Assembly (NCBI GenBank): GCA_965153285.1
Contig: OZ229111.1
DNA: 64,000 bases
Source: Podarcis tiliguerta
Lineage: Eukaryota
Direction: 5' to 3' (one strand)
Numbering within the stretch: the first letter of the stretch is position 1; the number at the start of each line of letters is the position of its first letter. The translations under genes and the position numbers were made by a program. Below are positions 16,554-34,900 of this stretch, piece by piece. The notes beneath the pieces are model-generated. The model made no database searches and was not told where the DNA came from. It was given only the letters and a program-made list of their open reading frames with translations.

Positions 16554-16594
<41 letters not shown>

Positions 16595-18930: not shown

Positions 18931-18982
<52 letters not shown>

Positions 18983-31100: not shown

Positions 31101-31260
31101 CAAATGTATTGGGAGTCCTGATCAATTTACCTGGATATCTCCTTAACTTTAACTATGTAATATATCACTTAGTGAGCATATGGTGTTCTAAGTAATATTT
31201 TTCTTGTGGGCAGGGGAAGTACAGAAGAAGGGAAACAATGTCTGTTCTCAGCCAACCAAA

Positions 31261-31294
<34 letters not shown>

Positions 31295-31872
31295 GCTTTC
31301 GTAGATTTTCACGGGTACAGGAATGCAGGTTTTGGTGTCCTCGGGTGTCTTCCCGTGTAAAAGTTGGGGTGTCTAGGCGACGTTTCGACGAGGTCTCACT
31401 CGTCATCTTCAGGCTGGTGCTTTCGGCTTCTTGTTACTGGAACAGAGCAGGATCTCAGTGTTTGAGTTCCTATAAATACTGTTGAGGAGGTGTGGTGTAT
31501 AGCCTCCAATGTTCTGGGCAGAGAGGAGGTTCCCAGGCTAGTGTGCCTTTTCTTCTTTTGTTCCTTAATTACTTGAGGGATATCTTGAGTGATTTCTTGA
31601 GTGATTTCCTGAATCCCACTTAGGTGGGTCATTAGGTGTGGATTAGTTGCTAAAGCCTTCGTGTCTTGAACTCTTGAACTTTGTGAAGAGTTTTTCTGAG
31701 AAGATGGCTGTACTGCACTTGGTTGTGCTCTGGCTTGGCTTCGTGTATAGGGGCGAGCTGTAACAAGAAGCCGAAAGCACCAGCCTGAAGATGACGAGTG
31801 AGACCTCGTCGAAACGTCGCCTAGACACCCCAACTTTTACACGGGAAGACACCCGAGGACACCAAAACCTGC

Positions 31873-31903
<31 letters not shown>

Positions 31904-34900
31904 CACGTTATTTTTATTTTGATCCATACTTAGATATTTTCTTTTAAAACATAAATACAATTCAGAGGGGGAAGGGGTATTCTCTTTGAGCTCTGGGATT
32001 CACAGCTGACTCTCTCATCTGTCCTCAGGAGGGTAGGAGTATCAAGGCGGCTGGTGCTGGTCTCACTGGCAACTTAATAGAAGCTTTTATATAAACAACA
32101 GCAACATATTCCAGAATATTCTGTGTAAAAGAATAAGTAGTACCGGATGTTTGGTCAAAATGTAGCAAAGCAATTTCCCCTGCTCTGAGATTCTCACTGC
32201 CTGTCTCCGAATGTGCTCAGAGCATTGTGTCCTTTAGCTGCTGACCATCGTAGCTACACGTCTCTGCATGCTGATGGTGAGCTGCTGAGTCCTGATTCAC
32301 CAGGCTCTGTAAAGTTCAAATTAGTCACCTAAACCAAAAGCCTTTATTGATTCCGAAAGCAATGCTAATTGCAACATAAACAATGGATAACCTTATGAAA
32401 TAAAGGAAATGAAGAAAAGTTACAAAACAGCTATGATTTCTGTGGCAATGTGTAACTGTCTGCCGAAAAGTATGAAAATCCCTAGCGCACATACAGCAAA
32501 CCATGAGCTGTTTTATCTTTTTAATTTAATTTATAATTTTTTGCACCTTGTTTCTCCCAGCAAATACACCAAACCATTCAGACATACTGTTAACGTGGAT
32601 ATATCTACACTAGAGCCAGCAGAAGCTAGGACAGGAACCAAACATACAGATTAATATTCTAATAGCACAGGATACCAAGAGCCTCAATTTCCCAGAACTT
32701 CCTCGTGGGAAACCTGAGGTCAGCAGTTATCGGTAGATCAGCAGATAATACAGTTTGCCATAGCTGCAAAATGAACTACCTGTTTAAAGCTTACTCTCAG
32801 GAAGTGCTTGTTTGTGCAAACTACAGCAGGACCACATAAGTTTTTCATTCCCTAAGGAGACCCATTGTCCACCACCAATATCACGCATGATTATTGTGAA
32901 TGAGATCAATGGTGCTGGGCATCCTTGATTCTTTTTGATGGCAACAAACTACACTTTATCATATTACTATTTTAGTCCATTCATAGCTTAGCGGTAGACC
33001 ATTTGCCTTAACATGCAGAAGGTCCCAGATTCAATCCTTGTTATCTCCAGGTAGAGTGGGAAGGTAGCTTGTATGGAATCCTGGAGAGCTTTTGCCAGTT
33101 CAAGTTGACAGTACTGAGCTGAGTGGCCTGACTCTATATACAGCAACTTTCTGTGTTCCTTTGTATTTTCTTTGATGGGTTATGCTTCTTCACTGGTTTT
33201 AGAAGATATAAGGCATGGGAAAGGGAATTATTTGAAAATAGCATACTTTCTATAGATGAGGTGAATCTATGTAGCATAGTCAGCTACACAACTGGTGTGT
33301 GTTCAATTAACATGGGAATTATTATTTTTTTAATTCTTAAGTGAAGGGATGGTGTAGTAATTTAATTAATTAAAATACTTTCATCCTGCCTTTTGCTCAA
33401 AAGGCCCCCATGGCTCCAGAGCCAGCATCAGAAGCAAACAGCAGAGACAAAAACCCAACCTCTCCACATGAGAGGACATGGAGTAGTGTGCAAAATCTCA
33501 GCAGGCATCAGAGAAAATCAAAGGTTCTTTGAAAAGGAGCTGTCTTTGCCAGCCACCTGAGCGTTGATAGAGAAATAGCAAGCTGAGCCTCATTTGGCAG
33601 GGAGATCCAAAGATTCAGTGCTGATGTTGAATGCCCTGTTCCAAGTAGTCCCTCACTGGATTATTCCTGGCTGAGGGGCTCTGAAAAAGACTTTGAATCA
33701 TATAGGCGAAGGCAACCCTGACCAACTGTGGTGTTTGTTTCTCTAAGCGAGGTTGAATCAAGAGATTCAGCTAGCCTTCGGCTCTTAACTGCTTTGATTA
33801 AACTAGGAATATCAAAGCAGTAACACCAAATCTTGTTACAGAAATCTGAGGGTGTCAAGGAGAGCTCAGTTCCAACATGTACCCAAGTTTTTATGTGATG
33901 CATTTATATTTAAGTGTGCTTTTTATCTAAGGTTTTACATATAATCGCTTTCTGTCCAGAGCCTCTGGATGAGGATGGGATATTTCACTCAGAGTTGCTT
34001 CATATATTATGTCGGAAAAACAGGTGCTAAATGCATGTATCATGCGAAGCCACAACCTTAAGAGTTCCCTACAACATTTGCCTGCGGTGCATATGTGTTT
34101 GGAAATACAAATATGATGTTATTTACCACATCCAGTCCTCGTACATGCAGAAAAAGTATGAAGCGCCCCATGTTGACTGGTCCAGTGGAATAAAATCTTC
34201 CTACTTATTCAGCTGCCAGCACTCTGGCCTGTTGATCTTTTCAGGGCCGGGAAAGAAGCTCGATCCAAACAGCTGTAGAATGTAGATTGATGAAATGAGG
34301 CTTGTGGGTTAAGCACAAAATGGAGGCAGCAGAGTAGTGTTCACAGTGACTGCTGTGTAGGCTTTTGTCCACTAGATGGTGAAGTGAGACTTTCTGGTTG
34401 CTTACGTTGATGTCTTGTCCTGAACCACGTGAGAGCTCTGGTGTTGGGCAGAATTCAGTAGCTTTAATATCTGTATTTTATAAGGTCTCTTTCTCCCACA
34501 GTTTTAGTATCTTATAGCTTTAAAAGCAGGTTAAAGCAAAACACTGGGGTCAGATTGGGTCCACCTGATTTGTGTTTAAACCCTTGATGTGATTGAGGAA
34601 AACGAATGTGTAGAAAAGTGCCACGTATTGATGAATCCCATTCCTTCCAGCCTCCTTCGTCACAATGTCAGCACCAAATGGGTATTGCTAATGCCTCCTA
34701 CGGGAGATGGAGGAGCCCTCCTGCCTTCTCCAGCCCCAGGAATCTCCACTGAGTATTCTGTATAAATGCTCCACTTGCAAAGCCCCCCCCCCCCCGCCAG
34801 TTTTGCCTCTTGAGTAATGATCAAACAGTGACAGATGAGAACAGACTACTTGTGTGCACAGCTGCCAGCCCATCCCTGTGTAGCGTGTTTTCTCTGCAAG

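Follow-up and report, generated by a model that had tools for sequence, protein, structure and literature searches.

Poseidon_Ac, a Penelope-like element (PLE) of Anolis carolinensis, belongs to the Penelope/Poseidon clade and encodes a reverse transcriptase (RT) and a GIY-YIG endonuclease (EN) (PMC11167929). Its enzyme cleaves AT-rich DNA and extends both strands (Frangieh et al., PMC11167929), and reverse transcription begins at two internal sites of the element's RNA, with the main start located 111-118 nt into the ORF (PMC11167929). The stretch between the two start sites, roughly nt 85-119, corresponds to an optional “tail” at PLE ends, and the template requires the first 172 nt of the ORF (PMC11167929). 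The published record of this element ends in CTGAGG and continues with ATG in tandem copies (PMC11167929). Because the CTGAGG end runs into ATG in these tandem copies, the hammerhead core of Poseidon_Ac can be read as CUGAGG-AUG; a 6-bp stem II and then GAAACGUC come next, and the cut lies near nt 29-30 (PMC11167929).

According to Craig et al. 2021 (PMC8557442), PLEs in general are prone to 5' truncation, and an inverted copy, likewise 5'-truncated, is often found next to the main one. Their tails measure 30-40 bp and are frequently found at one end only, while the bias of PLEs toward (TA)n conceals target duplications (PMC8557442). The minimal hammerhead ribozymes (min-HHRs) of metazoan PLEs are characterized by CUGANGA, a long helix II, GAAA, a palindromic ACGU and a GUC triplet; pairs on opposite strands, 100-700 bp apart, are common, and a variant from the Drosophila virilis Penelope element has a helix I of only 2 bp (PMC4209133). 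Cleavage by PLE min-HHRs is weak and takes place as dimers or with the aid of protein (PMC4209133, PMC11167929).

Here we describe a 580-bp insert whose layout matches this published picture. We consider it about 80% probable that a Poseidon-type PLE gave rise to it in one compound event in a (TA)n microsatellite, and that it is composed of two head-to-head, 5'-truncated copies.

Anatomy of the insert and its (TA)n target

Reading of the sequence and the tandem repeats reported by TRF place the insert (31295-31874) between two (TA)n tracts of the window, by which we mean the whole 64-kb stretch of DNA that was analyzed. A repeat search returned two inverted arms of 115 nt each (31323-31437 and 31760-31874), which are 100% reverse-complementary and separated by 322 nt. 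Repeat search and TRF thereby reproduced all of the insert length, (TA)n flanks, arm coordinates and 322-bp spacer given in a preliminary description of the locus, and the microsatellite target proposed there is borne out by the (TA)n that TRF finds on either side. The parts of the insert, with nt counted from the start of the ORF discussed below, are as follows.

31260-31294, no strand: left (TA)n tract, target microsatellite (TRF: period 2, 18 copies)
31295-31322, minus strand: 28-nt “tail”, assigned to ORF nt +85 to +112 of the minus-strand copy, outside the inverted repeat and in frame with the ORF
31323-31437, minus strand: arm 1, nt -31 to +84 of the minus-strand copy (putative pLTR end, hammerhead motif and ORF start), reverse complement of 31760-31874
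31438-31759, minus strand: spacer, assigned to nt -353 to -32 of the minus-strand copy, probable upstream pLTR/3'-region sequence, A/C-rich and T-poor on the minus strand, with one stop-free frame
31568-31612, no strand: 12-bp tandem repeat in the spacer, 3.8 copies (TRF)
31760-31874, plus strand: arm 2, putative inverted, 5'-truncated second copy, nt -31 to +84, without the tail (repeat search)
31873-31903 (feature listed from 31875), no strand: right (TA)n tract, target microsatellite (TRF: period 2)

The last AT of the element overlaps the right (TA)n tract. At the other end, the 28 nt at 31295-31322 have no counterpart on the right, and the inverted repeat thus ends short of the left end of the insert. 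A BLAST search of the insert against the window returned no further copies of any of its parts in the rest of the 64 kb.

Assignment of the spacer to the minus-strand copy

The arms are A/C-rich and T-poor on their sense strand (A 0.35, C 0.30, G 0.23, T 0.12), and the minus strand of the spacer is biased in the same direction (A 0.36, C 0.29, G 0.17, T 0.19), while the base skews reverse at about 31760. Since the composition bias of the spacer equals that of the arms' sense strand and the skew flips near the inner boundary of arm 2, we assign the spacer to the minus-strand copy. Judged by composition, this copy is the 465 nt running from 31759 to 31295, made up of 353 nt upstream of the ATG and 112 nt of ORF, and the plus-strand copy is the 115-nt arm only.

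The 353 nt upstream of the ATG contain no recognisable EN C-terminus and no Pfam domain. They could represent a long noncoding 3' region, or the source could be a pLTR-only, non-autonomous element.

On the minus strand, a 145-codon stop-free frame (31833-31396) extends across the spacer until it meets a TGA within loop II of the hammerhead; the 12-bp repeat inside it would encode QEIT twice. The frame has no Pfam match, and stop-free frames of such length occur in about 1.3% of composition-matched shuffles. It may have arisen by chance or may be a remnant of the ORF end of a preceding unit, and we do not claim it as coding.

A candidate hammerhead motif on each strand

Each arm contains the 34-nt motif CUGAAGA-U-GACGAG/CUCGUC-GAAAC-GUC, which is present once per strand in the window and for which shuffled sequences give an expectation of 0.

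31379-31412, minus strand: minimal hammerhead motif (motif scan; predicted cut after 31379)
31785-31818, plus strand: minimal hammerhead motif (motif scan; predicted cut after 31818)

We ran a descriptor, purpose-written from the min-HHR features of PMC4209133, on the 64-kb window and on shuffles of it. The descriptor matched these two sites alone in 64 kb, compared to 0.005 matches per shuffled window. The conserved core positions C3-A9, G12-A14, A15.1-U16.1 and H17 are all present (CUGAAGA, GAAA, ACGU and C17), together with a G10.1-C11.1 pair, a 6-bp helix II that is capped by a 6-nt loop in the predicted fold, and a GUC cleavage triplet. There is no helix III loop; the palindromic ACGU stands in its place. 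The motif thus displays every feature listed for the minimal metazoan PLE hammerheads (PMC4209133), but its helix I, at two contiguous pairs (G1.1-C2.1 and C1.2-G2.2), is shorter than the 4-5 bp expected of this type and in that respect resembles the Drosophila virilis variant.

Searches with the Rfam covariance models returned no hammerhead family, either at the gathering score in the whole window or at E<=10 in positions 31250-31920; the only hits were miRNA-like noise driven by (TA)n. This miss is expected, because the motif is devoid of a helix III loop. When two copies of the motif were cofolded, the textbook dimeric helix III was not the minimum-energy structure. The hammerhead assignment therefore stands at the level of the motif. 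Of the two opposed hammerheads reported in the preliminary description, what holds is a candidate motif on each strand, at two sites that the descriptor would hardly find by chance, while the absence of an Rfam match and the 2-bp helix I argue for restraint beyond that.

The ORF start and its probable link to PLEs

In each copy, an ORF begins at an AUG whose three letters are A9, the unpaired U and G10.1, so that the start codon reaches from A9 into the first position of stem II. The predicted hammerhead cut falls after nt 28 of this ORF.

31406 to 31296, minus strand: first 37 codons of a putative PLE ORF (translation; 25/37 identical to residues 1-37 of P0002)
31791-31874, plus strand: first 28 codons of the ORF (translation)

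A phmmer search with the 37-aa ORF start against 1.84 billion representative proteins yielded two matches, P0001 and P0002. We dismissed P0001, a repetitive protein, as a spurious match. The alignment to P0002 runs from start to start, with 68% identity over the 37 codons and a library-wide E-value of 4.2e-4. P0002 itself is a 189-aa protein encoded on a 2,989-bp Logan contig, for which we found no Pfam family, no named cluster member, no usable ESM Atlas neighbour and no PDB relative. We also compared it by eye to the ORF of Poseidon_Ac, for which File S1 of Frangieh et al. 2024 (PMC11167929) supplies the Repbase record: residues 33-142 of P0002 align with residues 34-143 of the Poseidon_Ac ORF, where 48 of the 110 ungapped positions, counted by eye, are identical. 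The probable link between the insert and a PLE ORF accordingly runs through one 189-aa protein and a by-eye alignment to Poseidon_Ac.

Searching metagenome contigs with P0002 gave four loci, all of which we rejected as spurious (one short word, in a small unrelated ORF), and the 34-nt motif had no exact occurrence in the viral contigs scanned.

Neither the insert nor the remainder of the window contains RT or EN domains, and the ORF is reduced to its first 37 and 28 codons in the two copies. This agrees with the earlier report that the insert has no RT or GIY-YIG ORF. The identification as a Penelope-like insertion with an inverted partial copy, also made in the preliminary description, is in turn supported by the homology of the ORF start, by the Poseidon_Ac record and by the published hallmarks of PLEs.

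Comparison with Poseidon_Ac and a possible mechanism of insertion

The insert resembles Poseidon_Ac in several respects. In both, the hammerhead core is CUGANG-AUG and places the start codon at A9-U-G10.1; a 6-bp helix II and then GAAACGUC follow, and the cut lies about 28-29 nt into the ORF. Both have 3' ends at two internal sites with a tail of roughly 30 nt between them, both are associated with an AT-rich target, and their ORFs appear homologous near the N-terminus by way of P0002. The two copies of the insert end at +84 (plus strand) and +112 (minus strand), a difference of 28 nt that corresponds to nt +85 to +112. These ends appear to match the published tail (about nt 85-119) and RT start (111-118), and in short by-eye alignments they fall near nt 90 and 116 of Poseidon_Ac.

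There are differences as well, and the family is a separate one. The first 30 residues of the two ORFs are unrelated in sequence; helix II and its loop differ, with loop II of the insert being shorter by 1 nt; neither the 126-nt 3' UTR of Poseidon_Ac (PAc) nor its EN C-terminus is matched by the 353 nt upstream of the ATG; and RT and EN are absent from the insert copy. The insert looks like a typical 5'-truncated, inverted product of a Poseidon-type PLE family distinct from Poseidon_Ac.

How might such a structure have formed? Judging by the in vitro work on Poseidon_Ac, the GIY-YIG endonuclease of the element would have cleaved the AT-rich target on both strands, and reverse transcription of the element RNA would have been primed by each 3' end at an internal start site. 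A first cDNA would have begun 112 nt into the ORF and run for 465 nt (minus strand, 31759 to 31295), including the 28-nt tail, and a second would have begun 84 nt into the ORF and run for 115 nt (plus strand, 31760-31874), without the tail. Both truncated cDNAs would then have been joined head to head at 31759/31760, and the perfect 115-nt inverted repeat would result from this joining. We infer the priming by both strands from in vitro data on another family, Poseidon_Ac.

Inverted L1 insertions arise by twin priming, in which a second primer anneals internally on the same RNA and the resulting segments do not overlap. The route proposed here resembles twin priming in that both target strands would prime cDNA, giving head-to-head segments. 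It differs in that both copies of the insert begin at 3' start sites and overlap, which makes the insert a true inverted repeat.

If the template rule of Poseidon_Ac applies, the insert could not transpose again, because the RNA past +112, up to about +172, is missing. The copy would thus be immobile and dead on arrival, provided that the 172-nt requirement carries over to this family. The insert had previously been called non-autonomous; this is correct insofar as it has no RT or EN, but it is better termed a 5'-truncated, dead-on-arrival compound copy.

Alternative origins of the insert

Rather than an autonomous PLE, the source could have been a relative that derived from a pLTR and was itself non-autonomous (a SINE-like element or non-LTR retrozyme), mobilised in trans by a PLE enzyme, in which case the mechanism and architecture outlined above would be unchanged. 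Such a source would fit the upstream 353 nt, where neither an EN C-terminus nor any Pfam domain was recognised and which are CpG-poor and include the 12-bp tandem repeat; in addition, animal retrozymes reportedly derive from PLE pLTRs and are present in reptiles (bioRxiv 10.64898/2026.07.22.740005). The insert also shares with non-LTR retrozymes the pLTR-like sequence, the type I hammerhead and the lack of coding capacity. However, those elements consist of head-to-tail tandem units with a same-strand hammerhead each, while the insert is a single inverted pair: it contains no direct repeats and one motif per strand, and its 465-nt copy shows neither a head-to-tail repeat nor a second hammerhead on the same strand. 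Moreover, the ORF start in the arms is clean and shares 68% identity with the N-terminus of a longer, PLE-type protein, and a long 3' region in an autonomous family would account for the same data. We therefore regard a pLTR-derived source as unlikely, although it deserves more weight than the explanations that follow.

Two separate insertions of the same family, in opposite orientation, could also have hit a single (TA)n hotspot, given that PLEs favour (TA)n (PMC8557442) and that the copies differ in their 3' end points (+84 versus +112). This is very improbable, since the 5' ends abut at 31759/31760 with no (TA)n between them, the arms are identical over 115 nt, and adjacent inverted truncated copies are a documented product of single PLE events (PMC8557442).

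It is even harder to believe that the inverted arm is an artefact of the assembly or of a chimeric read. Tandem and inverted arrangements of PLEs are a known source of difficulty in assemblies (PMC8557442), but the asymmetry of the insert is the one expected on biological grounds, with a tail at one end and ends at both known RT start sites, and the 322-nt unique spacer and differing unique flanks are unlike a palindrome produced by a missed adapter.

Finally, a Tc1/mariner-like MITE, which would have long terminal inverted repeats and duplicate a TA target, and which the long perfect inverted repeats with TA repeats alongside might bring to mind, can practically be discarded, because the inverted repeat leaves 28 nt at the left end uncovered, the arms encode a probable PLE ORF start and a hammerhead motif, and the composition of the strands is what two opposed retro-copies would give.

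Age and CpG content

Across 2 x 115 nt the arms show zero differences, and each arm contains 8 CpGs. With an assumed substitution rate near 1e-9 per site per year, raised tenfold at CpG sites, the 95% upper bound on the age of the insertion is about 5 million years, which is a loose bound. The insertion had been proposed to be very young: the absence of differences between the arms does bound its age, but only to an upper limit of a few million years.

The observed/expected ratio of CpG is 1.0 in the arms, 1.4 in the 28-nt tail and 0.2 in the spacer, compared to a background of 0.22 in the window. The CpGs are thus intact, as had been stated, in the arms and tail, but not in the spacer, which is at the level of the background. 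We noted that CpG content is uneven within one and the same insert (spacer 0.2, arms 1.0), and CpG content therefore appears to mirror the make-up of the source element and not the time since insertion. CpG content makes a weak argument for youth, because the arms have their CpGs within the conserved motif and stem, and the spacer is poor in them.

Predicted RNA folds and their possible consequences

Folded as RNA, the whole insert is predicted to form a perfect 115-bp hairpin (-352.5 kcal/mol, z = -23.7). A read-through transcript of either strand would contain one sense motif paired to its own antisense, and not two ribozymes. Because the motif would be locked in the 115-bp duplex of such a transcript, ribozyme action at this locus is unlikely according to the predicted fold.

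If the assignment of the locus to an intron is right, the insert lies in transcribed DNA, and processing of the hairpin is conceivable for that reason. Under the same condition, the hairpin might give rise to small RNAs or undergo ADAR editing and so act as a host-side trap that silences a still-active PLE family, a scenario that we regard as quite doubtful. The hairpin spans the hammerhead, ORF start and RT start region of the family.

In the predicted minus-strand fold of 31295-31388, the tail sequence CCCGUGAAAA pairs with UUUUACACGGG about 40 nt upstream, which places the +84 end in the apical part of a stem-loop. This fold is no better than that of shuffled sequences (z = -0.6).

Significance for PLE integration and further features of the window

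On its own, the insert adds a further truncated copy to a repeat class of which squamate genomes hold many, with an architecture that has already been described. It nonetheless appears to provide a clean natural example in which both published RT start sites are found in a single insertion, one per strand. The presence of one start site per strand fits the idea that a PLE enzyme cleaves an AT-rich target on both strands and extends each of them.

Elsewhere in the window, positions 57747-57880 hold a 71-bp unit in 1.9 copies with 95% identity, and two perfect (AAT)n microsatellites of 13 and 16 units (16554-16593 and 18931-18979) lie about 2.3 kb apart.
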